DNA of 64,000 nt from Azolla caroliniana (lineage: Eukaryota > Plantae > Polypodiophyta): contig JBHGNT010000022.1 of NCBI GenBank assembly GCA_043228905.1, positions 10,602,001 to 10,666,000 on the forward strand. The letters run 5' to 3'. Numbering within the stretch: the stretch's first letter is position 1; each line of letters starts with the position of its first letter. Positions 10,966-41,500 of the stretch are shown here, piece after piece. The notes below the pieces were generated by a model. The model worked only from the letters and a program-made list of their open reading frames with translations. It ran no database searches and had not been told where the DNA came from. Position numbers and translations under genes: made by a program.

Positions 10966-13579
10966 TGGCATGTTCCTCCATATCCTAGGGTGCTGAACTT
11001 TGCCAAGTTTTGCGAGACAAAGGAGGAATTCAACCACATATATGGTCTGTGAGTGGAGGGTAATGACCTTGTTGTGTTAACAGATAAATCGATTAGTGAT
11101 ATAGAATGGTTGTCAGTCTATAAAGCACCCACAGTGAAAGGCAAGGTGAAGTTGAAGCATGTACGACTAGAGTTGTATGAAGTCTGCATGAGGCTCCACC
11201 AAAAAGTACGTCAAGAGATCACCGTCAACATCGAAGTGTCTGTTGCATTGGCTAGAGCTTTTGCCTACGAGTATTGCAAAATAACAAAGTAAGCAACTAA
11301 CCTTGAAATGTACATGGTAGCTTGGGCTCTTGCAGATGAGGCGTTAGTGGAACGATGCCGGAAGATGGGGAGCTTGCAACAAAAGATGGCATGATTCTAG
11401 AGCATTGCAGTTGATGATGCAACTGCCGACTCTCAACAAACCCAGAAGGAGACACCACACATAAAAAAAATGAAAGCAAACGTGAATGATACAGATGAGA
11501 CATTGATTAGCTATATGCTAAAAAATGTCCATGAAGCCTGTGAAACATTAGAGACAACAAAGTCTGTTGTAGAGAAAGCAACTTTGGCTGCTGCAATGGA
11601 AAGCAAGGTCATTTTGGCAGTGACAACAATTAGAAACAAGATTCAGGTAGCTATTTTTTTGCTAGTGTGTTATAAATAGCTTGTACATGAAAATCTACTT
11701 AGTGAGGCATTATCTAGAACAAGTTGCTCAACATGAGCTCGAAACTGAAGGGCCGCTAGATCACCAGCGGAAAATATAGCTACAAACAGAGATTCAAGTT
11801 CTTTCAATGAACCTGGATCTTCTAGGGCTTAATCCTGTCGTTGATAAAAATTTGGAGAACCTCGAAGTAAGTTAATGATTCTTGTTTCTTGTTGTTCAGT
11901 CTTCCTCGTTAAGGAATGATAAATCGGTAAAATTGTTGGCTGTGTTGTAGGAACAATACACAAATCAAGAACACGTAGTTAGTTGCCTTAAGAAGCAGCT
12001 AAAATTTGTGGAGGGGATGGTAAGGTATAGACAAGAATTGGACCTCTACATTCTTGCTCCCTTCCCAAAAGTAGGAGAACCAGGCAACAATATATTGACT
12101 GTTCAAGTATGTTGCATCGCTTGCGGCTTAGCCCCAAACGACAGAACTACTACCCTGTTGGTACACCTACGAGCATGCTAGCATACATACCATATCGCTT
12201 GTTTTACATATGCCTATTACACTTGTACAGTATGTTAGGGGGATTGCAATACAACTCTCCCTGATGAGTAGAGAAAACATATAGGTAAATTTGTTGCTTG
12301 TCTCTATAGTGTAATAGTTAATTAGTTACAACTTAGCTAATTAGCTAAGCAATATAATGTGTGGTATCTAATTACTATTGTGGCTCTGTAGTATAGTAGC
12401 TAATTAGCTAAGTAGTATAAAGTGTGTTAGCTAATTACCTATTGCCAATCTATAGTATAGTAGCAAGTTAACTAAAAGAGTATCAAGAGTGGTAGCTTAT
12501 TAGCTATTACCAATCTATAGTGTAGTAGCTAATTAGCGAAGTAGTATCATGAGTGTAGCCAATTAGCTACTACCAAACTAAAGTATAGTAGCTAATTAGC
12601 TAAGTAGTATCAAGAGTGATAGCTTATTAACTACTGCCAATCTATAGTGTAGTAGCTAATTAGCTAAGTTGTAGCTAATTAGTTGAGCAATATTGTGAGT
12701 GTAGCTAATTAGCTACTTCCAAACTATAGTTGCTAATCAACTAAGTTGTAGTTAATTACCTAAGCAGTATCAAGAGTGGTAGCTTATTAACTACTGTCAA
12801 TCTATATAGTAGTAGCTAATTAGCTAAGTTGTAGCTAATTAGCTAAGCAATATCAACACTGATACCTAATTAGCTACTACCAAACTAGAGTATAATAGCT
12901 AATTAGCGAAGTTGTAAATGATTGGCAAAGAAGTATCGAGAGTGTAGGTAAGGTGGTAAAAAAGCACAATAGTGTAGTGGATAAATAGCTTCATAAAAGT
13001 AGCTACACCTATCTTGAAAAAGTAGTAGCTAAAGGGAAGCCGCTAATTAGCTGACATGTTGTTGTAGAATCTCGTGGATTAAGGAGGTTGCATGAGGTGT
13101 CTGGTGCCGATGACGTCACAAAGGATGAGGAGATAACTAGCAATGTGGCTGAAAGTAAGAGTCCTGCTATCACATTTCCTTTAGATCAACTTCACCCTAT
13201 TCTTTTGGAAGATTGTACTAAATTAGGCAATGTTGTGAAAAGCCATGAAATACTCGACCCAACATGTAAATCTGAGCTTCATAACAATAGTATTTTTGAA
13301 CAGTTGATGCAACATTTCTTCGAATCTCAGAACCTTGATTCAACCCCACCGAGCCCAACTGTTGATGATGTCCCACCATATCCCACTCTACTTGAACAGC
13401 TAGTGCAAGTCCCGGTTGACGTGCAAGCCGCTACTGAGGCGATGGAAAGGTTGTCCGAGGAGGACACGTTTGTGCAATGGGTGAAAGAAGCGCGGTTAAA
13501 TGGGAAACCTTCTAGAAAAAGGTGGAAGACGGGGCCGCAATCGGGGACAAGACCAGTTACTCGGCGAAGGTGCTCTTGA
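10966..13579 (+). pseudogene. Multi-exon gene relic with coiled coil and RING-H2 finger
   Basis: Exon 11951-12284 translates CIAC-x17-C*H-x2-H-x2-C-x7-CTVC with three TAG stops; GT donor 12285 and AG acceptor 13067 join in phase to ORF 13088-13579; upstream exon boundaries approximate. Confidence 0.6.
12300..13052. repeat. Degenerate tandem array built on palindrome TAGCTAATTAGCTA, inside intron 12285-13067
   Basis: More than 15 exact or near-exact AGCTAATTAGCT cores with recurring AGTATCAAGAGTG / CAATCTATAGTGTAG linkers. Confidence 0.9.
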
Positions 13580-16946: not shown

Positions 16947-16984
16947 ACATAATAAGAAGAGAATCCAGTGAGTATTCTAATGCT

Positions 16985-17325
16985 ATCTGATGTAGCTAGT
17001 TAGGTATTACCAATAGCTATTGGCTATTCCTAGTGAGTTAGTTATTACTAATAGCTAGTTAGTTATGATCATATTCTGATGTAGCTAATTAGCTATTGTG
17101 GTAGCTAATTAGCTGATAATAGCTAGTCAGCTATTGCTAGTTAGCTATTTTGAGTAGCTAATTAGCTATGATGATATTTTGATGTAGCTAATTAGCTATT
17201 GTGGTAGCTAATTAGTTGATAATAGCTAGTCAGCTATTGCTAGTACCTAGCTAGCTATTTCAAGTAGCTAATTAGCTATGGTCATATTCTAATGCTAATT
17301 AGCAATAGTGGTAGCTAATTAGCTT
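16985..17325. repeat. Second TAGCTAATTAGCTA array, upstream of the Sola2-like exon (probably intronic)
   Basis: Repeated GTAGCTAATTAGCTAT; ~104-bp higher-order duplication (17078-17180 vs 17180-17290); minus-strand AG acceptor near 16947. Confidence 0.85.
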
Positions 17326-17959
17326 ATAAGGTTTGTCCAACACTAGACACAAATAAGGATTGTCATGCTAAGCAACCCTCCATCAGTATCATGTCTTCTT
17401 GGTGAACGTTCCAAATTGTCGCGCTTAAGTAGCACACATATGAGTGATCACGCAATGTCAACATATTTGTGTGGCAATGTTTGGGAATTTAGCGAAACAA
17501 TTTATCCAAATGGTTCCGCTTTAGGACTAGCTTTTCTGTGACAATTGCAACTTGGTTAGTGCCTATATTTCTTTGTTAGAGCACATCACATTAAGTTTTT
17601 ATCACAATTCTAAAGCATGCATTGCAAGCAAAGCATTCTTGTCTGGGCTAAAAAAGGTTCCAACGAAAAAATATAGTACCCAATTTTGCTAATAAGTAAG
17701 CATATTTCCTCACACATATATATACATAACTTCGGTTATTTCACATTAGGAAAACCCATTATAGTTCCTCCATTTAAGGGTACACACATGAAATTTTCCC
17801 ATATCTTGCAAAAGGGAAATTTATTAAACGAATAAATAAAACAATACAATAAGATAATAATAATTTGTCATTATGACTTTAAATTAGATCATCAAGCTCG
17901 CAGTTGTATTGAAGAGAAAAATTCTCTTGTTGTGGCAGGTGAAACTCCAACATAACCAA

Positions 17960-20937: not shown

Positions 20938-23900
20938 ATCTGGTATTCGAGCGAACAACACAGAAAATGGAAGAATCGTTCGGCGGCATATTCAAGCTTA
21001 CTAGCTCCAACTACTCAGTGTGGAAGTCAAAGATGAGGGATATGTTGGTGTTTAAAGATCTTTGGTTGCCAGTTCAATTCGGGGACAAGAGACTGGATAA
21101 GATTGACGCCACTGTGTGGGAGGTGATGCACATGAAGACGGTGGCATACATTCAATGCTTCATCGACATGAGCCTGTACAACAACTTCAATGAAAGGAGC
21201 AAGGCTCATGAACACTGGGAGATGATCTGCATCATGTTCTAGAAACATGAATGTTGTTAATCGGGTTTCGATATTCCGGAAGCTAGTGAGGCTCCGATAC
21301 GAAGATGGCTCCAGTATGGTGGAGCACATCAAGGCCTTCCAGGGACTGATCCACCAGGCAACCTCGTTGGAAGTACCTCTTGCTAATGAGGTACTTGCAT
21401 TGCTCCTACTCGGTTCCCTCCCTGATAGCTAGGAGACGTTAGTTGTCACGTTGGGCAACACCGGGCCGGAAGTAAAATAGCTATCCCTAACAAGAGTCAA
21501 CTCGAGCTTGCTAGATGAGGATGTGTGTCGGAAAGACAAGGAGGTGATCTCTGACGCCAAAGCCCTCCTTACCAAATCGGAAAGCGGAAGACAAAGGAAT
21601 CGGAGTCCCCAAAACTGGGAAAAGTCGGGGACACGGTCAAAGTCTAGGGGGAGACCCACTTGCTTCTATTGCGGCAAGCCGGGGCACTTCCAGAAGAACT
21701 GTCGGCATTTCCGAAAAGACAAGAGAACTTACAGTACCGATTCGAAGAAGTCACCGGACCGAAACGGTTCGGATCGGCGAGGCTCGGACTGGAAGGGAAT
21801 GAAGGCGATCGCGGTAAGTGAAGAGGAACTAATGCTCATCACCGAGGAGAGTGGGTTGTCGATTCCGGACCGGAAATGCTTCTCATCCTACACAACCGAT
21901 GAGCATGGTTGTGTCCGGATGGGGAATGAAGGCACATGTCGAATTGTCGGCATAGGAGATGTGTTGTTGACAACATCAACCAGATGCAAGTTGCTACTGA
22001 AGGATGTCCAACATGTTCCAGAGGTTCGACTGAACCTAATATCAACAGGTCGGCTAGATGATGAAAGCTACATGGGTAGCATGGGGAACAGAGTCATGAA
22101 GTTCAGCAAAGGGAGTCTAATAGTGGCTCGAGCCCAGAAGATCAACACACTATACTTGATGAATACTCGGATATGCCAGGAAGAAGTAAACGTAGCATCT
22201 GACACTGCCTGTGAGCTGTGGCACAAAAGACTGTGTCACATGAGTGATTCCCGAAGACAACCTCATTCCAGTGAAGGACGTGCAACTTGAGAAGTGCATC
22301 GATTGCTTGGCCGACAAACAAAAACAAACCTCCTTCCGGTGAGGACCATAGATGAGACGGAATGCCCCACTAGAGCTGGTGCATACTGATGTGTGTCAAG
22401 TGGACACGAAGTCACATGCCGGATCGCAGTACTTCGTGACGTTCATAGATGACCACAACCGGAAGTTGTGGGTCTCAACAATGAAGATGAAGGATCAGGT
22501 GCTCTCCATCTTCAAGGAGCTCCATGCGAGAGTGGAAAAAGAAACTGGCCGGAAGCTGAAGGCGGTTCGAGCAGATAATGGAGGATAATACCGGGGGCAA
22601 TTCGAGGAGTACTGCCGGTCGAAGGGAATCCGGCTCGAATTTACCGTGCCGAAGACACCAGAACTAAACGGGTTGGCCGAAAGAATGAACCAGGCCATAA
22701 TGGAGAGAGTCTGGAGCATGCTTGCACATGCCAAGTTACCCAAGATGTTTTGGGTTGAGACGTTGACGACGGCGACCTACGTGATAAACAGATCACCCTC
22801 AGTACCCTTGGAAGGAGACTCACCTTAGAAAGTATGGACCGGCAAAGATGTATCTTACCGGCATCTGAAGGTGTTCAGGTGTCTCGCATACGTGCATGCG
22901 GCAAAGGACAAGAGAGCAAAGCTGGATCCGACGTCCAGGCCATGCATATTCCTTGGATACGGCGATGATGAGTTCAGTTACCGGGTGTGGGATCTGGTCG
23001 AGAAGAAGGTGTTCCGGAGTCGGGACATAGTCTTCATGGAAGACATGACCATTGCCGACAGGGAGTCGGAGAAGTAGGTGATGAATGTCGGATCATTCAA
23101 TGAAAACCGGCTCGAGGACAAAAGGAATTACCCGGTTGAAAACTGGACGCTAGCCGATAACCGGATGACACTCGACGAACCGGCCAGATACGGACAGGAA
23201 TCCAAACCGACCGAAGAAGACGACGAACAAGAAGAAGAAGACACTGAAACTGGACAAGATCCCGAATCGGATGAGGATGAGGAACAAATGAAGGTACCGA
23301 CAATCAGAAACCATGGACAGAGATATCCTCTCTGAGAGAGAAGAGCCTCTCGGAGATTTCCGGATGCAAAGAATGTGTTGCTAACCGATGAGGGGGAGCC
23401 GGAAAGCTTCGAAGAAGCAAAGAGAGACACCCACAGCCGCAAGTGGTTGAGTGCCATGCAGGATGAGATGGATTCCCTGCATGAGTACCGCACGTATGAA
23501 CTGATAAAGTTGTTGAAAGGAAAGAGGGCACTCTGGAACAAGTGGGTGTACAAGTTGAAACCGGGAGATGCCGGAAATCCACCAAGGTATAAGGCCCGAA
23601 TCGTGGTGAGGGGCTTCCAATAGAAGAAAGTAGTGGACTTCGATGAGATCTTTGCCCTGGTAGTAAAGATGACATCCATCCAGACGGTATTGGGCATAGC
23701 GGCAAGCATGGACCTCGAGGTAGAGCAGTTGGACGAGAAGACGACATTCCTCCATGGTGACCTCGAACAGGAGATCTACAAACACGTTCGCGTTCACAAG
23801 TGGAAGGATTGCACATTCTACTTGTAGAATCTTCTTAAAACGAAGCAAATACACCCTCTCTACAAAAATTGGATGCACTAGTATCACATGTTCCTCAACT

Positions 23901-24159
23901 TGATGAGAATTTGCAAATATAAAAATACATGATAGATCTACGACTGGAGATCATTAGAAATCATGCAAGTTTAGACATGTTGATAAGTTAATGTAGGCAT
24001 AATAAAGTTCAACTATGGCTCAATATGTCACTACTGTGCGACAAGGGAAACACTAACTTAAAGACTTATATTAATTAGGTAAGTTTTACAAAAATATCAG
24101 GTGTACTTGTATCCATACTAATAAAATGAGATATAATTTATACTTTGACCCATACGTGC

Positions 24160-24433
24160 ATGTATGTAATTGTGGAAAATGTAGGATAGTGCACATTAGG
24201 ATAAGTGATTGGAATAACTAACTTATTAAAGTATTCAATACTTGTATTTAAAGTTGATCTAATCTATTCCTCAGTTTGTTCATATGGGATCAAACCATAT
24301 GTTTATAATTGTGGACAATGTAAGGCAATGAACTTTACGATAATGTCGTGGAAATAACAAACCTATTAGGCTTTCATACCTGTATTTAAAATTGATCTAC
24401 TCTATTGCTTAGGTGATTCACACAAGATCAAAC
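24160..24433. repeat. Diverged ~138-bp tandem duplication in the left subterminal region
   Basis: Two copies of TAATTGTGGAMAATGTA...TGTATTTAAARTTGATCTA.TCTATT...GATCAAAC. Confidence 0.6.
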
Positions 24434-24826
24434 TCCGAACGATAACGCAACTGGAACCATTATCAACACACTACACAATCTAAGCAGCAATGGAATAGAA
24501 ACATAATAGTTTTAACAATAGAAGACAAAGATCCATAATAACAACATGGACAGTCATGGCAACAATTATAGGGCCATGTTCTGTTAAGGTTAGCTTGGAC
24601 CAAAATCAGCCTCCATTTAAACTAGTTCATGTTTCTCCATAAGTTTGGTAGTCAGCTATGCACGCGGTGAAACCAATGTCATAAATCTACTAATCAAGTA
24701 TATAAAAATAAAATTGAAACATATAGAAGATTATAAAGAATAGAATCCACTAGGTAAAACCCAAAATTTGTATTAATAATGTGAAATCTTAACAAATCGT
24801 CAGTGTCATATTCTTCATAGAGTCTA

Positions 24827-27800
24827 TTACATAGCAATCAATTCATCAACGTCATTTTCTTCATCATCTTGTGTAGAACTATCTTCGGCTATACGTGCAT
24901 TGGTTTCCCCTGTTAGCCGAGCCAACGAAATATCTTCTATAAGCTCATCATCAAGCTCTATTAGCTCCCCCGGTTCGCCGGCTAACGGAGGAATAGGCTC
25001 TCGCGAAGCAGGTTGAAACCTTTCTGTATTGGCGAGGTTCTTTGCACCGACCTCCTCATCTTGGTCTGGGCACTCCCACAAAGCCTTAATCTGCATATTA
25101 ATAAATATAACTTGGTCCTCGTCCTTCTCCAATGCAACTGTATTTCTAAACAGCTTCAATGCACATGCAGACGTAGTTCCTGTGATGTAAGTAACAATAA
25201 GATTTAGTTGTCAAACGAAAAAAAAGGGATTGGTTATCTCAAGATTGTTACCCTAGTTCGAGGAATACCTGTGCCAGAAAAGAGATCTAATATCCAGTCT
25301 CCTTCGACAGAAAACATCTCGATCAAGCGCATCATAAGTCGTTGAGGTTTTTGGTATGGGTTGACAAGTCCTCGTTCTGTCGTGGTGACATGTCGCAATT
25401 TCCGTGTCACTGCTGGATATACCAACAGATTTGAACCTCCCACTTCATTAGAATGCTCTTTGATTCTCTGTTTCTTAATTTCATCGAAGTAGCCAACCGT
25501 TATGTATTCAATGGCATTAACGAACCGAAAAGTTGGCCCTCTATTTACATTGGTCTTGATCCTATAAAAAATAATTCATCGAGTTAAGAATAGATTCAAC
25601 AACCTTAAGAAATGCAATATAGTGAAAGACACCTATAAATAATCCTTACCATGCAAGGTTCTCGATGCCATGGCAACGAGATCTCAAAGCTTGAGCTACC
25701 AAGTACCCTTGGTCCATACTATGAAAGACAACTATTCGCCACAAGGATGCGGTTGTTAGCTCAGCGAAATCCTTGACCATCTTCTCCAATTGTTTAAACC
25801 TAAATGGTTCATCGTCGTATGATGACCCAGCCATTCGAAATCCGTAAGGAATATCCGCAATCATTAGCATATATTCCTTCTTTGGCACCTTCTGGATCAA
25901 GTCGATGACATCACCGCAAACCACATTGTAGTAAAGATCTCTCGTAATATCTTTTTTGTGGCTAAATTTTTTAAAGGAGCCATCTTCCTCCATTTCGTAC
26001 GCCTTGACTAAGCGACGATCCTTTTCTTTTCTGGCTCGCTCGAGATGTGCAAGGAAGGATGTAGGGAAATCGTGTATATCCTTAACTTCTCCTTGTTTCT
26101 TGCCTCGACACGGTTTCTAATAGAAGCAATAGGACATCAGGTATTATTATACAAGCTCTACATATGATGAAAGGGTAATGAAAAACCATGAATACTAACC
26201 CAATCCTTGAATGCAATAAAATACTCTGCTAACGCCTTATACGAAGACGTTAGAGGATAATCCTCGGTCACTTGTTCCCAAGTTATACATCCAAGTTGTT
26301 TCATCATAACTTCTTGAATCTTCATGTACACCTTATGACTGTAAAATTAGAAATCAAGATTAGAACTTTGAATTACACCAGATAGACTACAATTTCAGTA
26401 TTTGAAAGACTTACTTATTGAACTCAATGACCATTTCTTCAAGGCTTAAATCTTTCACCACAACCCTTGACAAAACCGACACAAGAAGCTGCTCGTCCTT
26501 AATACCTTGCATCGCTCTCCATAGAGACAGCTTCATGTCGTCTGCCGCTTCTTCAATTGTCAAGTCAATTTTCTTGGCGGCTTGTGACTTTAAGTCTAGT
26601 TGAGGGTCAACCCTACATTTCTTTTGTCGTTGACCCTTTACCTCCTTATTCTCCCACATTGAGAAGATTTGATCTTGTAGGTCCCATACTTCTCCATCTC
26701 TAAACGCCAATTGAAACCAAGACTCATACTTTCGAAGACCATCGGACCTAACATTATCATCTACCACAATGCCGACTTCATGCAGACATTGACGTCGAAG
26801 GCCTGGATGTAACTTCACACCAAACTTTTGTTTCACGTCTAAATACTCATGGTGGAAGAACCGTATACGCTCAATGGACGACATTTTCTGCCTATAGTCA
26901 TTATCATTATTATGGTCCCATGCCAACAGCTTAGCCTCTTCGGTTGTGAGCCTAACATAAATTTTGCACTCGGCATACTTAAAGAAGAAAGTTGTTGGAT
27001 GTTCTCTCACAAGTTGCCGACGTGCATCTGCTGAATGCGATCCACCAATGACAAAATAATTATATTGATCATGCTTTCTAATATCAAAATCTTCAATGGT
27101 TTCACATTCTTCAGGATCTACCATAACAATAAAAGGCACCACAGTGGCATGAGGATTAATTTTCATTTTTTTCTTGAGATTTTGAACATGCATGCGGTGT
27201 GGTTCTCTAATCTCAAGTGGTCGTCGACCTGTTTTTTCATCAATAGGGGGCCGATGGATGTGTGTTATAGGCAAATTAAACACTTGCCCTTTCCTGACCA
27301 GTTTCCGTTGCATTAACTCTCTCCTTATCTTATTCTGCTCAGATGACAAAACACCCGAGGCCAGCTCAGCTCCTGGCGTCCCCTTATTATCCTCCTCTTC
27401 GTTTTCACTTGTTGAATCCGTATCCGACATTTTGGTTGTCTTCTTCTTTGGTGGTCTTGACTGGACTTTGGATACCCTTTTTGTGGCCTTCAATGGGGAG
27501 GGCATTTCATCTCTTAGAGTTACATGGCCTTGTATATAAGGCCTCAAGGTAACAATAAGGTTTTGTGAGCTATCAAGTGCTTTTTTGAATGCTTCTGGCC
27601 CACAAGATTCCTTTACTAAAAGATCTTCTGAAAGGAACACTTTACGTACCCCCTTGGAGCACTCTATCATTACCAGTATGTTGGCCGAATCTACATCTTC
27701 GTAGTCAAATCGTAGAATACGGCCATACATAAATGGGGTTTCCTTTCCAAGCTACCCCTCACCCTTCTTCTTTGCTGTATACAATACGAATTTTTTCTTT

Positions 27801-29268
27801 GAGTTGACATATTGCATACGCCATTCCTTGTCCGTTAGATCTCGGTCAGGAAGGTCTTCACCTCCAGTAGCGGCGACAAGTTTCTTTTGGCTAACATCAC
27901 TATGTGGCTGAGATTTTGTCTCTTCGTTAAAGAGAAGCTTTTTTCCTCTCTTCATGGTCTCTGGAGCTACCTTGGTCTGGGCTTCGATTGGAGAACCTTG
28001 TATGCGAAGCTTTATTTTCTTCACGGGTCGGTCCGACTGGTTCTCAAACGACCTATTTATGAAAGTATATGCAAAAACATAAGTTAGGTAGTCACGTAGA
28101 TTAAGGTTGTATATTAACATGAAGAACAGTTCCCACTAGCAGTCCTATATTCAAAAATCTATTATAGGCAGGGCTATTCAACCTAGAAAATATATATCGT
28201 AATAAGTAAACAGGGTTATATATTCTTTTAAATAGTAGGTATGACTTATATAGATTCCAAACCTGTATTGAGGAGAATTTGCTATCGTAAAGGCAATTTG
28301 TGGATCATTTTCTACTATTTTAAGCTAAAGTAGGTCATAAAACACCTATAATTAGAGCATGTTTTTTTTTAAAAGTAAGGAAAGTCAACATAAAAAAGAC
28401 TGATTTTGCTAGACAATTTGATATCTTTTCCACCCCATAATTATTTGTTACCCCAAAAACACAATTTTTCTCTCTCACAACCTTCTTTTATACAGGAACT
28501 CGATACGGCGTATCGAGTTCTTGTTTAATTCCTAAACTTTAAACGGGAACTCGATACGCCGTATCGAGTTCCTCTGCTTTCTTTGCTTTTTAAACGGGAA
28601 CTCGATACAGCGTATCGAGTTCATGTTTAAAACCTAAACTTTAAACACGAACTCGATACGGCATATCGAGTTCCTGTTTAAAATCCAAACTTTAAACACG
28701 AACTCGATACGCCGTATCGAGTTCCCGTTTAAAGTGTAGGTTTTAAACGGGAACTCGATACGGCGTAACGAGTTTCTGTTTAAAACCTACACTTTAAATA
28801 CGAACTCGATACGCCGTATCGAGTTCGTGTTTAAAGTTTGGATTTTAAACACGAACTCGATACGCCGTATCGAGTTCGTGTTTAGAGTTTAGGTTTTAAA
28901 CACGAACTCGATACGGCGTATCGAGTTCGTGTTTAAAGTTTAGGTTTTAAACGGGAACTCGATATGGTGTATCGAGTTCCTGTTTAATGTTTAGGTTTTA
29001 AACAGGAACTCGATATGCCGTATCGAGTTCCTATTTAAAGTGTAGCTTTTAAACAGGAACTCGATACACCGTATCGAGTTCCCGTTTAAAAAGCAAAAAC
29101 AAATTATGAACTCGATACGCCGTATCGAGTTCATGTATAAAGTTTGTATTGTATACATGAACTCGATATGGCGTATCGAGTTCTTGAGCGACGAAACATA
29201 TTTACAAAAATGTTCACAGTGTCAGAGGCCTACTTGGAGTCCTCGCGCTCGATTCTCTTTGAAGACAT
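24827..29268 (-). pseudogene. Six-exon ParB/Srx-like + beta-class N6A/N4C DNA methyltransferase gene (~974 codons, one in-frame TAG at 27752-27754)
   Basis: Exons 29268-29234, 28052-26415, 26338-26200, 26116-25650, 25561-25269, 25179-24827 total 2925 nt; all introns GT-AG and phase-compatible; CGDVIDLI, IADIPYG, LAWIK, EYI, NPYQKP..LI..FS.EGDWILDLFSGTGTTSACALKLFRNTVALEKD. Confidence 0.88.
28496..29183. repeat. Array of 14 palindromes GAACTCGATACG-S-CGTATCGAGTTC at exact 51-bp period, in intron 1 of the methyltransferase gene
   Basis: Unit starts 28496, 28547, 28598 ... 29108, 29159; 26-bp AT-rich spacers mostly bounded by TTTAAA. Confidence 0.97.
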
Positions 29269-29304
29269 GGTTGATCGTGTGGAAGTGGAGGCGGAGATCG
29301 CGCT

Positions 29305-29377
29305 TTCGTGCTTTGTGCTCTGTGTGCTCTGTGTGCTTTGTGTGCTCTCTACGTTCTGTGTGCTCTGTACGCTCTTG
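29305..29377. repeat. Short (CTGTGTGCT)-type repeat in the predicted 5' UTR of the methyltransferase gene
   Basis: About 6 imperfect 9-mers between TATA box and ATG. Confidence 0.7.
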
Positions 29378-29402
29378 TGAGTGAAATATGACGAGGTCTT
29401 CC

Positions 29403-29410
29403 TATTTATA
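29403..29410 (-). promoter_or_regulatory. Putative TATA box of the methyltransferase gene
   Basis: CCCTATAAATAGG on minus strand, ~135 bp upstream of ATG 29268. Confidence 0.6.
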
Positions 29411-30111
29411 GGGATTGACAACATTGGTTAAAGTAACCATAGTCACCTTAACCAAGGTTGGTAACTTTGAGGATAGTTAGTTGGTAACCATAGTCACATT
29501 AACTAGAGTAACTTATGATTGTATTAATGATTACAAAGTCAAACTAACATATTGATCAATCTTTTATAGTCATAACAACCTACAATGACTTCAAAGGTTA
29601 TAAAGGAGACAATGATAGAGGTTCATGAATGTACCAATGATTGATTACTAAAAGCAACAATTTTTATGACTCTCAAATGCTATGTATTAAAGATAATGGC
29701 ATGAATTAACCAATGATTGATAAGTCTAATATTTAAAATGGTGAGCATTAAAGAACCAATGAGTGAGACGTTCTATATCAAAATGGGTGCCATTAATTAG
29801 CCAATGATTTTAACATTAATCCAACATATTCATGGCTTGTTAATGATTAGTTTTATATTTTACTTCATTTAACTTCATATAGATCTAGTTTATATAATAA
29901 TTGATATTTTAAGTACAATTACTTTATTAAAAATAATTTTTTGATGTATTGTATTAATAGAATATTACATAATATAGACATTCTATTGATTTGGCTTTTG
30001 TTTAGAGAGAAGTTTATGTTTAGAGAGGAGTATATGTTTAGAGAGGAGCTTATTAGTTTTTTTCCTTACCCTAAGAACATAACTTAGAGAGCCCTATCTA
30101 GACCTTAAGCC

Positions 30112-32892
30112 ATGAGTGAAGATTCACCATTCTCGATTGAAGAATATTGTTTGTCATCAGACCCATCGTTTTCTACTGAAGAGTATTGTTTGTCAACAGA
30201 GTCACCATATTCGATTGAAGAATATTGTCTGTCGACCGACTCACCATATTCTATCGAAGAATATTGTCTGAGCTCATCTACAGGGAATGTAAATAATGAC
30301 ACATGTGAAGAGTTCTCTATTGAAGAATACGATATTAATAAAGATACCGAGAATGAAGGAAGTGCCCAGGAAACATTGAATAACATTGGCGATGGTCACA
30401 ACAGAGAATTAGACTGTAACAAGGTTACACCAACCTCTATGCAGGAAGAGAAATCTGGGAGCCCTATGCATATTAGAAGAATCCCACGAAGAATTCGTCT
30501 GGCTAGATTTAGCTTGGTGACATCAGATAAACAGATTGGATTTGATGTCAAAAAAATATGTTGTGCCCGTGGTTGTATGTCTATGATTGGAAAATCAAAG
30601 TTGCGAGAATTAAGGCGATACTATTTTTCGATGACCGGTGATGACCAAGACACTTACCTCGGGTCACATATGCAACTAGTATCTGACAAATGTACGGGGA
30701 TCAAAGTATCATTCGAGTATTATATCTTCCATGCGCAACAGATATGTAGAGTTGCATTCAAAATTGCGTTATGTGTTAGTAACATGCGGCTACATAGAGT
30801 ACAACAACGTCTACTTAGCGGGGATCAGATGCTCAATTGTAAAGAGGTTCCAAGTATGAAAGGTGCAATTGGAAGACATGCTATTGGCTGGATGAAAACT
30901 TACTTTCAGTTAAATTGTGAAGTAATGCCCACTACAGGTAGGATGCATCTTTCTGATAATTATACACGTCGGGAAGTTTATGATGTCTATCGATCTGATA
31001 TGCTGGGCTCACGTAATAAGTCTATCACCTATAGCCAATTCACAAGATTATGGAGAGCTCAGTTTTCAAATGCTATTATTCCTCGTAAAGTACGTATGGG
31101 GTATTGCTCCATTTGTGCAAATCTTAAAAGTTTGGCTAAAGGTGCAAAGACATCAATGGAAAAGGATACGAGTAAGAAGTTACTACAAGAGCATCGTGAG
31201 GCACAATCCTTAGAATGAAGGAAGGCGATGCATCATAGAGAGAAGTGTTTGAAGAGGCCCGAACAATACATGTGCTTAATGATAGATGGCATGGACCAGA
31301 AGAAGACATGCTTGCCGCATATGCGGAGGCTCCCCAAAGATGTCAATGATGAGTGCCTTGTTCAAATGCACTTGGTGGGATGCTTGGCTTATAATAGGTA
31401 TGTTCGACCTCACGTCTTCATTACTTACCCCAATGTTCACAATGACCCTAACCTAACAGTTACAGTGATTCACCGAGTTTTGATGTCTTGGGGACAACCT
31501 TTCCCCCCTGTTCTATACATTCAATTGGACAATACTGCTAGAGAGAACAAAAATTCAACTGTATTTGGCTATCTAAGTATGTTGGTCAACCTAGAATTGT
31601 TTAGGAAAGTGAAAGTCAATTTCCTTTTGGTTGGCCATACACATGACCATATAGATAAGATGTTTAGCACATTCTCCAGACAGTTGTCTCGGCATGATGC
31701 TTTCACTTTACCTAAACTATTTGATGTCATTTGTGATGCTTATACACCACGCCCAAAAGTGTTACACTTGAAGGAGGTATATGACTTTAAGAGATATATA
31801 TTAGATGGGGGTGGTGGGAATGTTAAAGTGCTTGCTCAGTTAAATAATATAAGTTTCAATCACATTTTTATGATAAAGAAAAATGGAATAAGTGGTTCTA
31901 CACTTTTGTATGCTAAACAATATTCATCTTCTACAACATGGGAACCTGAAGGTGGTTGCCAGTTATTACTTTGTATGCCGAGTACAATTGTCCATGGAGC
32001 TAAACAAATGCCAATTGAGAAGAAAGGACAGTTGCAGAGCGACTTGGTATCAGAACAAAAACGTTCATGGCTCCAAGCCTTAGAAGAAAAAAGAAAGCAG
32101 ATTGAGGCCGCCAAGAAATATGCCGCACAACAAGACACGTCATGATGGGATGTATTTTATAGTGATGAGAAAGAAATTATAGACAATTGTGTATCTGTTG
32201 ATAATTGGAATTTGGAAACGCCATTCACATGGTCGCTGCAACATGATCGCGTAAATAGAAGTCCGGAGCAACTAGTAAATGCGATTAATGACAGCTTGGT
32301 CCATCCACAACAAAGAGACATTTATGTGGGACCAAGGATGACCAAAGCAGCCGAAGCTAGATGGCAAGGAAATTTGCAAGAGCTCACCGCGGGGATGTTG
32401 ATTGCAACGCCGGCTGATGAGAACTCACATGGCCACCAATTTTGGGTTGGTAAAATTCTAGAAGTGCTAATGCATGAAATAGAAAACACGATCAAGTCTA
32501 TAAATGTTCATTGGTACAACACTAGAAGTGCAAATGCTTTTACAAGTAAGTATACATTGGAGATGATTGAATGCCAAACAAGAAGGGGAGGTAGGAAGAG
32601 GAAGCGAAACATTCGTAACACCTCGACCCTTGATATCTCTGATGTGGATATCATCGTGTACAACTTCACACTTACAAAAGCCGAACGATTAAGGAAGTCA
32701 ACAATAGATATAATAAAAGAAAAATTACCAGGTCTACAAGGTGGCTCGAGTCAAAGGCAAACGAGATCTGCTACATATAATCTAGAGTCAAACCATTTGG
32801 TTTATGACGAAGATAATGCACTGACTGGTACATCCGAGGATGATGAGGAGGAATCGTCATTGTATATTAGTTATAGTAGTGATTCTCCGTAA
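30112..32892 (+). pseudogene. Sola/DUF7869-type DDD transposase, ~926 codons, two in-frame TGA stops (31216-31218, 32143-32145)
   Basis: Three ORFs in one frame; CCARGC, ICRVAF, YSQFTRLW, CSICA; catalytic-type motifs MIDGMDQ, IQLDNTARENKN, FLLVGHTHDHIDKMFS; lies between TIRs. Confidence 0.85.
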
Positions 32893-35540
32893 AGGAGTGA
32901 TCATGAATGTATATTTGGCTATTAAGTGTAACGACATTCCGCTTGTAACAAATCGAGTAATATAAAATCATGTGTTTTGAATTCTTATGATTTCTAAAAA
33001 ATCGTTTCTTATAAAATAACATTGGTTGTAAAGTTTGTGATATAAATTGAGAATGTATCTTTTTGAAATTCGTCTTTTTTTAGTTACTTCTAAATCACGA
33101 AAATAGTGGATTTTTAACCTTTTTCATAGTATGTTTGAACATGTATGATACTGGTATCAATGTGTTTTGTAAAATCATTGAAAAACCCCTAAAATTTCCC
33201 TTATCCTTCCATTTATGCGCGATCCTTCCACTTGTGAACGCGAACGTGTTTACATGCATCAACCGGAAGGATTTGAGAAGAAAGGGAAGGAGCACTTGGT
33301 GTGCTAGCTGAAAAAGAGCCTATACGGACTGAAGCAAACTCCCCGGCAATGGTACCGGAAGTTTGACTCCTTCATGACCGACCAAGGGTACCACAAGACG
33401 CAGGCCGATCACTACGTGTTTGTGAAAAAATTTGATGGAGGAGATTTCCTGATACTCCTCCTGTATGTGTGGATGATATGTTGATCGTCGAACGAAACCA
33501 AGGCAATATTCGGATGCTGAAGAAGGCTCTGAACCAGACCTTCTCAATGAAAGACTTAGGGCCGGCAAGACAGATCTTGGGAATGCACATCATCCAGGAT
33601 CGATCGAAGAAGTTGGTGTGGCTGTCAGAAGAGAAGTATGTGACAAAGGTGCTTCAACGATTTAGGGTTTCATAGGCAAAACCGGTCAGATCAACATTTC
33701 CAGCAAACATCAAGCTATCCTGAAAACAAAGCCCGAGGACAAAGGCAGAGAAGACGGATATGATGTGTTGTGCGGGTGTCGATATTTATGCGGAAGTGTT
33801 TGTTCGGATCATTCGGCTATGAACAACAAACAACGTAAACAGAAAGTAGAGAGGGCAAATTGAGACTTACACAGATACGAGCTTTAATGGAAAGCTTCTT
33901 ATTTTCTGCACAGAGCGTTTTCTCTCCGAATTACACTCGTCCTCCTCATCGTCATCTCATTACAATGTTAGGTATTCGCTTATATACTAAGCCCTAACTT
34001 ATTAACGAGTTCACACTCGGACAAATACAACTTGGAAGGAGTCGGCCTTTTATGCCAACAAACTCCCCCATAAAAGGAATACTCTCTTTTTTCCATGTAC
34101 AAATGCTTACAGTTATCTCACCCGTAAACCTAGATTACATATTTAACTAGATCTTATGTTACAAGTCTGTCAGCAAGTAGCCAAGTCGGCAGAGGTATAG
34201 TATAAGTGTCAGTCAGCTCTTACCTTCAGCTCCTCGTTCAACTTTCTTTTGCTCGGTCGATTGTCGTAGCCCTATCTTCTTCCTTAGTGTTCCAAACCGT
34301 TGATCTGGGAGTGGCTTCGTCAAGCAATCGGCGATGTTCACCTCGGTGTCGATCTTCCGAACTTCAATCTCTCGGATATGATGATACTGCACCTCAATGT
34401 GCTTCATCTTCGCATGGTAGACGGGATCATTAATGAGGTGTATTACACTTTGTGAGTCGCAATAGATGGTCGGCGCTAGTTGGTTTATTCGGTTTGCAGT
34501 TCCGAAATCAGCAGACAATCGATGCAGCTAGATCGCTTCCTTCGCTGCTTCCGACGTTGTTATGTACTCGGCTTGTGTGGTAGACAAAGTCGTGCACTCT
34601 TGAAGTTTCGACCTCCATGATATTGCACCACCAGCATAGGTGAAGGTGTAACCTAATGTCAATTTTCGATTGTTTGTATTTGCAACGTAGTCGGAATCGG
34701 TATAGCCTTCGACTTCGGCTAAGTTTATCAGTCCGAAAGTCAGTTGTGCATCCGTGGTTCCTTTCAGATATCTAAGGATGTGCTTGACGGCCTCCCAATG
34801 CTTCTTCCCTAGGTTTGACATGTACTGGCTGACCACCCCTACGACATAGGCTAGGTCGGGCCGGGTCACCACCATTGCGTACATGATACTTCGTACTGCT
34901 GATGCGTAGGGTATCTTTCCATTAAGCTCTCTCTCCTTGTCGTTTGCAGGAGGGTCTCTGTCCGATAGTCTGATCAACATCGGAAGCCATATTGATGTTG
35001 GCTTCGCATTCTCTACGTTGAAGCGCTTTAGCACCTTGTGGATGTAGTCAGATTAGGAGAGTCGGAGAGTCCTGGTCGTCCGATTTTGCTCTATCCTCAT
35101 GCCTAGTATGTGTCGGGCTTGTCCTAGTTCCTTCATCGCGAATTTTGCATGAAGGCTCCGCTTCAGCTTACCGATCTTTTCCGTCGACATATAGGATCAG
35201 ATAGATCCTAGACTCGTCGGCCAGTTGCCGAACATACATGCATGGGTCACAGTCTGATCTGTTGTATCCAAGCTGCCTTATGTGGGAGTCGAACTTCTGG
35301 TACCACATTCTTGGCGCTTGTTTGAGGCCATATAGACTTTTCTTTAGTCTGCATACGAGGTGATTGTCCTCCCCCGTCGCCGTGAAGCCTGCCGGTTGAG
35401 ACATGTATATGTCTTCTTCCAGATCTCCATGCAGGAATGTCGTCTTTATGTCCATCTGCTTGAGCTCTAGATCTTCTGTCACCACGACTCCTAATAAGAA
35501 TCGGAGGGTGATCATCTTGACTACTGGTGAGAATATCTCT

Positions 35541-38500: not shown

Positions 38501-41500
38501 GCAAGTGTCCCTAACTGGTAAGACCCATTGAACCCGCGTGTGATCCAGTACGGTCCGGTCCATCTAAACCGTAGTTTGCCTGGCATTTTACTCATCCGGG
38601 TCTGGAACACTAGTACCGGCTTGCCGATTTCAAACATCTTTTCGTTTCCCTTCCGGTGCCGATCTACAAACGCTTTCCGTTGCCGTTGTTCCAATTCCAG
38701 GTGCATGATGCTCGCCAGTCGATGTTCTTCTAGTTCACACAGAGCCTTTAACCGAATTGCCTCTGATTCTTTTTCATTAAGTCGTTCCCGAATCTGGATC
38801 CGTAAGCTCGGTACCTGGAACTCGACCGGCATGGTGTGGTTTGAATGCTTGTTTTGTAGGCTGTCTGGTAAGCCCAAAGCGCACTGTGCAGCTTCGTGTC
38901 CCAATCTGTCCGATTCTCATTGACGATCTTGCGTAGGATATTCTGTAGCGTTTTGTTTGTTGACTCGGCTAATCCATTGGCTTGTGGGTAGTATGGGGTG
39001 CTCCATTTATGTACTACCGCATAGAATGACGTCAAGCTGTCCACTACCTGTCCAAGAAAGTGCCCTCCTTGGTCGCTTATCAGCTCTATGGGGCATCTGT
39101 ACCGGCACCAAATGTAATCATATAAGAATTTTGCCGTTGACGCCGCGGTGTTGTCTCGTAGGGCTTTGGCTTCCACCCATTTAGTGTAGTAGTCCATCAC
39201 GACGATCACATACCGGTTGCCAGTTCTCATTGTCGGTGGTTTACATGGTCCAACAAAATCCAGTCCCCATTTCTGAAATGGTTCTAGCGCTAGTACTGGC
39301 TGGTGCGGCATCCTAGCTTGTTCCGTTGGCTGGCCCATTCGCTGGCATAGATCACACACTTTCGCGTACCGGACTGTGTCTTTCAATGTAGTCGGCCACC
39401 ATAGGCCACTTTGCCATATCTTCCTTGCCGTAGCATCCCCGGAATAATGGCCTCCGACGACTCAACAGTGTGCTTCCCGTAGTTTTACCTCTTTCTCGTC
39501 GTTGCGCACCGCTCGTCGCCATATACCGTCCGCACCTTTGTGGTATAGCGTGTCCTGTAATAAACAGAAGTGTTGGCTTTGTACCGCCAGGAGTTTCCTC
39601 TCGTCTCGGTTCATCTCCTCTGGAGGCAATCCGGTGCTCAGAAATTGGTGCATATTTGTTAGCCACTTATCTTCTGGTGCCACCATTTCATCTGTTGCCG
39701 TTTCCATAATGACTTGAAATAGCTCAGCATCCAGAAACTCGTCCGGTACTCCGCCGCCGGTTTCGCCAGAATCCAACCAGCTTAAATAATCTGCTACTGC
39801 ATGCTGTATGCCGGGTCGGTGGAATATCTCGAATTCGAATTCCTGTAATAGCAAAGTCCACCGGGCCAACTTACCGGTAAGTGACGCTTTGGACACTAGG
39901 TAGAGGAGTGCCGAATGATCTACATGAAAGGAAAACTTTCTTCCCAATAAATAATGTTTGAATTTTGTTACGCTGTAGATCATGCCTAAAGCTTCCCTTT
40001 TCGTGGTGGAATAATTTCGTTCGGCTTGGGATAACTTCCGGCTTGCGTAATATACGGGCCGGTACCATCTTGGCTCCGTAAGTTGCATCAACGCACTTCC
40101 GATTGCAATGTCGGACGCATCCACGAACACATGAAATTCCTTCGCCCAATCCGGGGGTTGCACTATCGGTGCTTGCGACAATAGAACTTTGAGTGCCCGG
40201 TACGCCTTGTCTTCGGTGTCGGTCCACTGCAACCGTGTTTAGTGTACCGCAGCATGCAGTGGTGTAGCTAGGTCCGCCAAATACCTGAGCATTCGGCTAT
40301 GCTAACGAATTTGGCCTAAGAAACGGCTCAATGCATTTGCCGTTGTTGGTGCCGGTACCTCCAGGATTGCTTTTACTTTGTCCGGATCCACGGCGATGCC
40401 CTCCTTGCTCACAATGTGCACCAGTAGCGTTCCGCTGGACAAGCCGAATACACACTTTGTCAGATTCAGGCTTAGCCGGTAAGCCCTACACTTTTCTAGA
40501 CAGAGTCGGAGGTGCCTACGGTGGTCTCCTTCCCGACTATAAACGGCGAAGTCGTCGAGGAACACTTGCATGAATGCCGGTATGAATTCTCCGAATATTT
40601 CCATGATGATCCTCTAGAACGTTGTCGACGCCGTTTTTAGTCCGAACATCATCACTACGGCAACAAACACTCCCCATTCAGTGACGAAAGCCGTTTTCTC
40701 CTAGTCATCGGGGTGCATCCGGATCTGGTTGTATCCGCTAAATCCTTCTAAAAAACTATATACCTCATGGTCGGCGAATGTGTCCAAAACTCCATCCGTA
40801 AATGGAAGTGGACATGCATCAGTTACTGTCGCCGCATTAAGCTTCTGGTAGTCGACACATACTCTGATTTTGCCATTTTTCTTTGGTACGACTACTATCG
40901 GGCTCAGCCATGTAGATTTCTTTATAGGACGGATAAAGCCAACCCTCAGCAACTTGTCAATTTCCTCCTTGACTTTGGCGGCGTAGTTTGGATTCATCCG
41001 GTACCGTCGATGTGCTACCGGTTTGGCGTCTTTGCTCAAATGTATCTAATGCTGATATAGTTGAGGATCGAGCCCTCTCATATCCTCGTAGGACCAGGCA
41101 AACATGTCCTAAAACTCTTTGAGAAGTGTAATCATCATTGTTCTGTTCTCTGTAGTCATTTCCTTTGCTATCTGCATCGGTCTAGCCTCTTCCGTAGTTC
41201 CTAGATTTACCCCGTCTAGTTGGGATGCTTTAACCCGTTGTGATACGGCCATTTCTCTTTCCAGCGCTTCTTGTGCTTGCCGTAGCTCCCGGATCACTTC
41301 TTTATTTGGTTCTTCGTCCGCTTCGTCCGGTGGCAGTATGTATGGTGATACGGCTTCAGCTACGTCGATTTCGAACAGAGGTACTATCTTCGGATTCTCT
41401 TGCAAGTATTGATCCACCTCTTCGTCTACTAATCCGTCCAGCATATTGACACATTCGGCATATAGGGGTGTTAATTCCTTCCCGGTATCTGTCCGTGGTT

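Follow-up and report, generated by a model that had tools for sequence, protein, structure and literature searches.

The closest described counterpart of the gene considered here was reported in 2025 from the brown alga Ectocarpus, in which the 21.5-kb transposon Sola1-1_Ec32 carries, on the strand opposite its transposase, a gene for a protein with a ParB-like domain and a DNA methyltransferase; its authors proposed that this accessory protein binds and modifies its own element, and they cited similar proteins for green and red algal transposons (PMC12477816). We have analysed a window of 64,000 nucleotides (nt) of the fern Azolla caroliniana (contig JBHGNT010000022.1, positions 10,602,001 to 10,666,000; "the window" below means this whole stretch), in which a minus-strand gene at 24827-29268 is predicted to encode a ParB-like amino-methyltransferase within a transposon. 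Compared by description, the two systems share an accessory ParB-methyltransferase gene opposite the transposase strand and differ in host and size (brown alga, 21.5 kb and 1104 amino acids there; 9.5 kb and ~974 amino acids here). The gene of the window element belongs to a kind already described in algae in 2025, and the idea is not new. The best explanation overall, which we hold with good confidence, is that the window contains a decayed two-gene cut-and-paste transposon with a ParB-like methyltransferase gene, for whose live copies we propose self-marking.

Prokaryotic and phage fusions of ParB (PF02195) with PF01555, the methylases of ParB-terminase loci (PMC4738411), have the same domain order and the same permuted methyltransferase. 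They are ~390 amino acids long, intronless, carry DPPY and are recognised by Pfam ParBc, whereas members of the plant family begin with a long extension, have a larger helical domain and end in an acidic tail; their motif IV is D-hydrophobic-P-Y, and their genes contain introns and lie in a eukaryotic transposon. Several eukaryotic adenine methylases have been traced to phage ParB-terminase loci (Iyer et al., PMC4738411). In Bostrychia, a Plavaka transposon encodes a ParB-domain accessory protein beside tandem inverted-repeat arrays (bioRxiv 10.1101/2025.02.11.637652). The likeness of Bostrychia PAG3/PAG2 to our element lies in the combination of a transposon ParB-like domain with such arrays, and the same element also encodes an N6-adenine methylase; the differences are that it belongs to a Plavaka/CACTA-like superfamily, that its ParB domain is fused to a 2-oxoglutarate (2OG) oxygenase, and that its methylase is separate and fused to SET. 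Two further eukaryotic enzymes, both writers of N4-methylcytosine, are Marchantia DN4MT1 (MpDN4MT1a/b; TSPPY, no extra domains) and bdelloid N4CMT (SPPY with a chromodomain); they are PF01555-type, beta-class and of bacterial origin. They differ from the Azolla gene in having (T)SPPY rather than DIPY, in being without a ParB domain, and in being host genes, not transposon genes.

In our search of the literature, no demonstrated activity was found for any eukaryotic transposon-encoded DNA amino-methyltransferase, and what has been published on brown, red and green algae amounts to short annotations. Judged by sequence comparison, what is new here is the conserved D-hydrophobic-P-Y form of motif IV and how strongly the gene is constrained, the location of an array of palindromes within an intron and the conservation of its phasing, and the spread of the cassette across streptophytes (the Azolla window copy, Ceratopteris, Adiantum, Ginkgo, Riccia and Chara).

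The element and its spliced gene

The element is delimited by the copia sequence that surrounds it, homology to copia running over 21517-23780 and resuming at 33251-33765. Its ends, target site and transposase gene are the following.

23781-33250, no strand: the complete DNA transposon (9470 bp), lying inside an older copia fragment, the homology of which is interrupted exactly here
23777-23780 (left) and 33251-33254 (right), no strand: target-site duplication TACA; the uninterrupted copia has a single TACA at ~50179-50182
23781-23816, plus strand: left terminal inverted repeat, 34/36 match to the right end, first 29 perfect
33215-33250, minus strand: right terminal inverted repeat, pairing with the left end
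30112-32892, plus strand: transposase gene in a single frame, DUF7869 at ~31339-31923 (PF25273, 1.6e-51)
31216-31218 and 32143-32145, plus strand: premature TGA stops of the transposase, where the copy L010 has Gln and Trp

In L008, L009 and L010, three diverged copies that were also aligned to the window gene, conservation of the 36-bp termini is 94-96%, and similarity to L010 begins exactly at 33250. The window transposase is collinear, at 68% identity, with an intact 915-amino-acid open reading frame (ORF) of L010; DUF7869 itself has a wide animal distribution. The older copia sequence (21517-23780 + 33251-33765), the insertion target of the transposon, is ~76-82% identical to an intact copia elsewhere in the window and lies on the opposite strand. 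A target duplication of 4 bp is one that Sola1 elements presumably share. It is documented for Sola2 (PMC3627910). In its layout the element agrees with the published Sola1 type, its transposase being matched to DUF7869. The window copy is full-length but dead, with three nonsense mutations, namely the TAG of the methyltransferase gene and the two TGA stops of the transposase.

Within the terminal repeats, the methyltransferase gene (minus strand) stands head-to-head with the DUF7869 transposase gene (plus strand), and the 843-bp divergent region between methyltransferase exon 1 and the transposase ATG is likely a bidirectional promoter. The same head-to-head pair is found in Riccia sorocarpa (L002), in Adiantum nelumboides (L004), on a metagenomic contig (L001), and in L008 and L010, and comparison of these loci shows a synteny conserved across distant plant lineages. 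Among homologues with a species name are those of Chara braunii, which has many paralogues, and of Ginkgo, Riccia, Adiantum and Ceratopteris, the last being the closest (62%). One Chara entry, GBG86584.1 (P0002, 1825 amino acids; L003, BFEA01000570.1 10001-39538), is a prediction that fuses two ParB-methyltransferase copies ~26 kb apart.

The gene model joins six minus-strand exons by five introns into 2925 nt, or 975 codons including the stop (~974 residues), and draws on minus-strand ORF fragments at 27752-28120, 26411-27730, 26158-26331, 25646-25993, 25234-25443 and 24827-25159. Exon and intron boundaries were derived independently from the sequence and the arithmetic was checked; searches and folds used single exons or natural homologues.

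29234-29268, minus strand: exon 1, 35 nt, ATG start, peptide MSSKRIEREDS; 35-nt ATG counterpart in L010
28053-29233, minus strand: intron 1, 1181 nt, GT..AG, containing the palindrome array; 674-nt equivalent in L010
26415-28052, minus strand: exon 2, 1638 nt, N-terminal region, ParB-like and helical domains; from ORFs, homologues and selection
27752-27754, minus strand: premature TAG, sole lesion of the methyltransferase gene; mostly Gln, also Lys/Ile, in relatives
26200-26338, minus strand: exon 3, 139 nt, linker; the homologues P0019 and P0060 run unbroken from exon 2 to exon 3
25650-26116, minus strand: exon 4, 467 nt, catalytic half of the methyltransferase, motif IV DIPY at 25855-25844; from the family alignment
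25269-25561, minus strand: exon 5, 293 nt, with NPYQKP (25362-25345) and the initial portion of motif I (DLFSGT G); PF01555
24827-25179, minus strand: exon 6, 353 nt including TAA at 24829-24827, remainder of motif I (GTTSACA..VALEKD) and acidic tail; from contiguity in P0006 and P0033, and hhalign

All five introns (1181, 76, 83, 88 and 89 nt) run from GT to AG, none has a length divisible by 3, and each would bring in-frame stops if retained. GC content is 30% in introns 2-5 as against 42.5% in exons 2-6. Removal of the introns restores LAW|IK across intron 4 and DLFSGTG|TT across intron 5 (25287-25269 + 25179-25172), and leaves the TAG at 27754-27752 as the one internal stop.

The test of splicing was comparative, with distant homologues and closer copies taken from public assemblies. 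An exhaustive HMMER search with the 439-amino-acid ORF of exon 2 returned 414 relatives, and relatives mapped onto the window are collinear across the exon junctions. The Ginkgo homologue P0006 passes from residue 446 to 448 over intron 4 and from 547 to 546 over intron 5, where P0033 is contiguous as well; P0017, an intronless single ORF of 789 amino acids on a metagenomic contig, is contiguous (632 to 633) over intron 4; and P0019 and Adiantum P0060 continue from exon 2 into exon 3. Closer copies show 73-88% amino-acid identity in exon 2 and form clusters of up to 40 member sequences. In L008, L009 and L010, all eight GT/AG dinucleotides of introns 2-5 are retained where covered, the model frame has no stops, and DIPY is retained. 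Their exons are 66-82% identical to those of the window, with indels solely of 3 or 6 nt, whereas identity in introns 2-5 is 39-64% and indels there measure 1-18 nt. At the position of the window TAG these copies carry CAA, AAA or ATA, and most of the closer fragments have Gln.

Exon 1, which is the least secure element of the model, is supported as well: conservation of the exon 2 protein begins directly after the acceptor, with no conserved ATG inside exon 2, and L010 has a 35-nt ATG exon (MSSKK...) with the donor GTAGG as in the window, followed by a 674-nt equivalent of intron 1 that contains the same palindromes and ends in the same acceptor, TAG|GTCG. On this comparative evidence we regard the gene structure as real and far beyond chance splicing, which is ruled out by the three diverged copies that keep splice sites and frame.

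Selection was gauged on these copies and on a short independent copy, L007. The ratio of nonsynonymous to synonymous differences per site (pN/pS) is 0.03-0.25 from exon 2, downstream of the stop, to exon 6, and differences fall mainly at third codon positions; synonymous sites are saturated, which makes the ratios rough while leaving their direction not in doubt. By exon, the values are 0.16-0.20 in exon 2 downstream of the stop, 0.05-0.10 in exon 3 and 0.03-0.12 in exon 5, and exons 3-5 are the most constrained (0.03-0.12). As estimated from these alignments, the gene family is shown to be under strong purifying selection in all exons.

These results agree closely with the original prediction, an earlier note on this DNA, which had proposed five GT-AG introns, with their lengths, phase and 2925-nt sum, and the rebuilt motifs LAW|IK and SGT|GTT at the junctions of introns 4 and 5: all of these were reproduced, and the splice junctions have support in the copies, where GT and AG are retained and exon indels preserve the frame. 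Its single lesion, a TAG plausibly derived from CAG, is indeed the only internal stop and faces mostly Gln in relatives, and its view that the gene is borne by a transposon gains from the terminal inverted repeats, the TACA duplication and the adjoining DUF7869 transposase gene.

The protein and the palindrome array

The protein would begin with a short N-terminal module, continue with a domain of ParB/Srx fold, a helical domain resembling that of ParB and a linker, and end in a beta-class methyltransferase, dependent on S-adenosylmethionine (SAM) and with an unusual DIPY motif IV, and an acidic tail. An AlphaFold (AF2) model of the ParB-like part, built on a 26-sequence alignment, reached a predicted local distance difference test (pLDDT) score of 85. 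The top 46 Foldseek matches of this model are all ParB, Noc, KorB, PadC, sulfiredoxin (Srx) or SbnI, the best with an E-value of 1.2e-5. Aligned with VIA-align to residues 42-141 of C. crescentus ParB, it gives a Z of 11.2 (2.3 A over 99 residues), and the whole chain aligns to ParB 7bnr_A with a Z of 11.4 (model residues 11-301); the helical half alone matches Spo0J 128-223 weakly (Z 5.4). As a prediction from a modelled structure, the ParB/Srx fold assignment is solid, and it is structure (pLDDT 85, Foldseek, Z 11.2) that bears out the ParB-like label of the original prediction.

26885-27289, minus strand: ParB/Srx-type N-terminal domain, model residues 10-144; from AF2, Foldseek and VIA
27052-27017, minus strand: motif VIGGSHSADARR of the ParB-like domain, paired by hhalign with VLGGNMR of prokaryotic ParB-methyltransferases
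26414-26884, minus strand: helical domain resembling the ParB DNA-binding (helix-turn-helix) domain; from whole-chain ParB alignments

The family motif VIGGxHSxxA(R/K) ... GLTxxEAxxLAxxHNxD aligns with VLGGNMRLKA ... DLTExQ ... DN of the prokaryotic fusions. In the region of the ParB cytidine triphosphate (CTP) motif, GGxH[S/G/C]xxA[R/K], the Gly, Ala and downstream Asn (HNxD) positions are retained. One family member has a faint DUF6551 match.

Upstream of this domain lies a conserved N-terminal module (YGRILRFDYED...LRPYIQGH), at 27730-27506 in the first 75 residues of the 439-amino-acid ORF and extending upstream to ~28052. In the AF2 model these residues (1-75) form three strands and a helix (pLDDT ~80), an incomplete fold with no PDB match below E 0.2 in Foldseek, and in the window the module is probably cut by the stop codon. 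It may be a reader or dimerisation domain.

The methyltransferase domain is recognised from the small exons themselves. The exon-5 ORF matches PF01555 at 33.8 bits (cut-off 26.7; E 4.3e-8), and full-length homologues from Ginkgo, Chara, Riccia and a metagenome match it too, Ginkgo at 7.6e-18. On the coding strand, DIPY (25855-25844) lies 5' of DLFSGTG (25287-25269), that is, motif IV before motif I. In the family, motif IV reads D-[IFLA]-P-[YHC]-G, in which D, P and G do not vary, and is followed in the alignment by WxKPN, PYQKP, FSGSGT and VExD; FSGTG|TT of motif I aligns with FAGSGTT of prokaryotic enzymes. Searching with a profile of the methyltransferase domain found 24 proteins, nine of which are PF02195+PF01555 fusions of ~390 amino acids; with those nine, hhalign aligned the family domain at a probability of 99% (E 2.8e-18) over a stretch running from motif IV past motif I. 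The conclusion that the small exons encode a beta-class PF01555 amino-methyltransferase is supported by these alignments, as the original prediction had it from the order of the motifs. Across the alignment, D-hydrophobic-P-Y appears as a conserved variant, not as decay. Capture of a ready-made prokaryotic or phage ParB-methyltransferase would be the simplest history, the fusion having been inherited as a unit.

The palindromes form an array in intron 1.

28486-29186, no strand: 14 palindromes with core AACTCGATACG-N-CGTATCGAGTT at exact 51-bp spacing; from TRF and a motif count

TRF reports a period of 51 and 13.7 copies, the palindrome unit is 23 bp, and the motif was counted 14 times against 0 expected; none was found in the terminal and subterminal regions of the element. 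L009 has the same palindrome motif at the same 51-bp period despite saturated synonymous sites, L008 and L010 have degenerate copies at the equivalent position, and in Riccia and L001 the region upstream of the methyltransferase gene has other repeats, direct and inverted and specific to the lineage, with a period of ~50 bp. This pattern fits binding sites co-evolving with a dimeric DNA-binding protein that the element encodes. Palindromes are bound by ParB proteins as dimers, and we infer that the ParB-like module could be the protein that binds the array. A comparable logic is reported for VANC of the Arabidopsis VANDAL elements, an element-encoded anti-silencing protein said to bind, in a sequence-specific manner, short motifs arranged in tandem in the element that encodes it; the protein and its target motifs reportedly diverge together between lineages. 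VANC is an unrelated protein with no enzymatic domain, and the analogy is one of logic only.

Differences among the 14 palindrome copies (28497-29182) are mostly CG to TG or CA, the pattern left by host cytosine methylation. They would fit host cytosine methylation and deamination of the array. The TAG at 27754, a position at which most relatives have Gln, would be consistent with this process as well.

Proposed self-marking and its rivals

We suggest that in live copies the ParB-like module, as a dimer, would bind the element's own palindromes, 51 bp apart, and bring the methyltransferase to element DNA. The mark could then serve the element by keeping its divergent promoter active against host silencing, or else by tying transposition to replication, a role that Dam has for IS10 and Tn5. 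That live land-plant and charophyte copies (ferns, Ginkgo, liverworts, Chara) write a non-canonical mark, N6-methyladenine (6mA) or N4-methylcytosine (4mC), on their own palindromes through a ParB-like tether is a specific proposal that we consider rather unlikely as it stands. If it were true, the element would have a private epigenetic state that counters host silencing by 5-methylcytosine (5mC) or times transposition, and plant genomes would carry transposon-borne amino-methylation systems, occasionally domesticable by hosts. The streptophyte cassette, together with selection, the motif IV variant and the phased array, makes a concrete, testable model of a self-marking transposon; intact natural copies have been identified that can be assayed, the window copy being dead and without functional importance.

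Several results weigh against the overall reading of the element and its gene. Two RNA runs from the same species gave no reads on 24800-29300, which is not evidence of silence, and the Chara locus L003 has no DUF7869 gene within the fetched flanks. Searches of Pfam (PF02195 ParBc), with the exon and 26 family members, and of PDB sequences by phmmer and hmmsearch, with the exon and the 26-sequence profile, gave no ParB match, and hhalign of the family ParB region with the prokaryotic ParB-methyltransferase fusions is weak (probability 18.6%). The Arg pair of the ParB CTP-binding motif GERRxR is absent (GGxHS instead), so that ParB-style clamping and spreading are not implied. Finally, the canonical motif IV, (D/N/S)PP(Y/F/W/H), is not matched, its first proline being replaced family-wide, and catalysis is therefore not guaranteed.

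A different reading of the array has a small but real chance of being right, namely that it is unrelated to the ParB-like domain and represents transposase sites or small-RNA hairpins, with the methyltransferase acting on the host genome, RNA or protein. Lying in an intron, the array would be expected to form long hairpins when transcribed, and the CG to TG/CA differences among its copies are those of a host-methylated sequence. Against this, the motif is absent where transposase sites would be expected, in the terminal and subterminal regions, and the dimeric binding of palindromes is what ParB proteins do. Moreover, lineage-specific arrays of inverted motifs adjoin the ParB-methyltransferase gene in three very distant lineages, and in red algae another accessory protein with a ParB domain is reported to show this association too (bioRxiv 10.1101/2025.02.11.637652).

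Self-marking as we propose it leaves two possible target bases. PF01555 comprises enzymes of both kinds, and specificity within it has switched repeatedly and is not readable from sequence (PMC8885841), in agreement with the caution of the original prediction on this point, and the Ectocarpus authors leave 4mC or 6mA open (PMC12477816). It is on such grounds that the enzyme could be an N4-cytosine methyltransferase and the transposons carriers of 4mC writers related to DN4MT1 and N4CMT, a reading that we think unlikely. Motif IV begins with D, not with the S of SPPY/TSPPY in N4CMT and DN4MT1, and DN4MT1 is without extra domains. By PDB sequence, the Ginkgo homologue matches the N6A enzymes M.RsrI, CcrM and M.MboIIA at 4e-7 to 1e-6, as against 0.13, a weak match, for the N4C enzyme N4CMT (8s9m) and 0.24 for M.PvuII; DN4MT1 was compared by description. 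M.RsrI, CcrM and M.MboIIA are the best solved sequence matches, over an HPTQKP-like loop and the FxGSGT SAM loop, and differ in having DPPY, restriction-modification or cell-cycle roles, and no ParB domain. DPPY is the form seen in the nearest prokaryotic relatives found; those named by their source are called adenine-specific or DNA modification methylase. From the sequence evidence, 6mA would be the more likely mark, because of the motif IV aspartate and the adenine-specific relatives. The suggestion in the original prediction that such transposons are a source of 4mC writers is left unsupported, with no specific link to DN4MT1 or N4CMT; close kinship with these is not supported, given DIPY versus (T)SPPY and E 0.13 to 8s9m versus ~1e-7 to N6A enzymes.

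It is very unlikely, in our view, that the methyltransferase domain is catalytically dead, in the manner of the inactive methyltransferase domains found in DIRS1 retrotransposons, and that the protein serves the element solely by ParB-type DNA binding or regulation. Inactive transposon-borne methyltransferase domains have been described by Iyer et al. (PMC4738411), and motif IV is DIPY here and D-hydrophobic-P-[Y/H/C] in the family, not DPPY. Yet the catalytic exons, 3-5, are the most constrained of the gene, and from Chara to Ginkgo the family retains the D, P and G residues of motif IV together with the NPYQKP loop and the SAM loop FSGTGT. The first proline of motif IV contributes a backbone carbonyl, which a hydrophobic residue could still supply.

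A host gene or bacterial contamination, for which the prokaryotic type of the domains might speak, has a negligible probability and is refuted by spliceosomal-type introns conserved among copies, a position inside terminal repeats and a target duplication within a copia element, many diverged copies in clusters of up to 40 members, and nonsense mutations in both genes of the window copy.

Other features of the element and the window

Within the element, the start of the transposase ORF (30120-30270) contains a 39-bp tandem repeat of 3.9 copies that encodes a repeated SIEEYCLS-like peptide, and the divergent region contains a 9-bp microsatellite, TGTGCTCTG, of 7.4 copies at 29314-29379.

The window consists almost entirely of nested transposons. 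A young, apparently intact Ty1/copia lies at 48367-53704, with long terminal repeats at 48367-48981 and 53096-53704 that are 98.2% identical and a 1419-amino-acid gag-pol ORF (48992-53251, minus strand) comprising gag, a protease-like barrel, integrase and RVT_2. A fragment of a Ty3/gypsy chromovirus integrase (rve, SH3_Tf2-1, chromodomain) is found at 106-1296, and further fragments of reverse transcriptase and RNase H at 39462-40232 and 56281-57564. Two blocks of tandem repeats, at 12303-12950 and 16977-17329, have units of ~60-110 bp and are mutually related.

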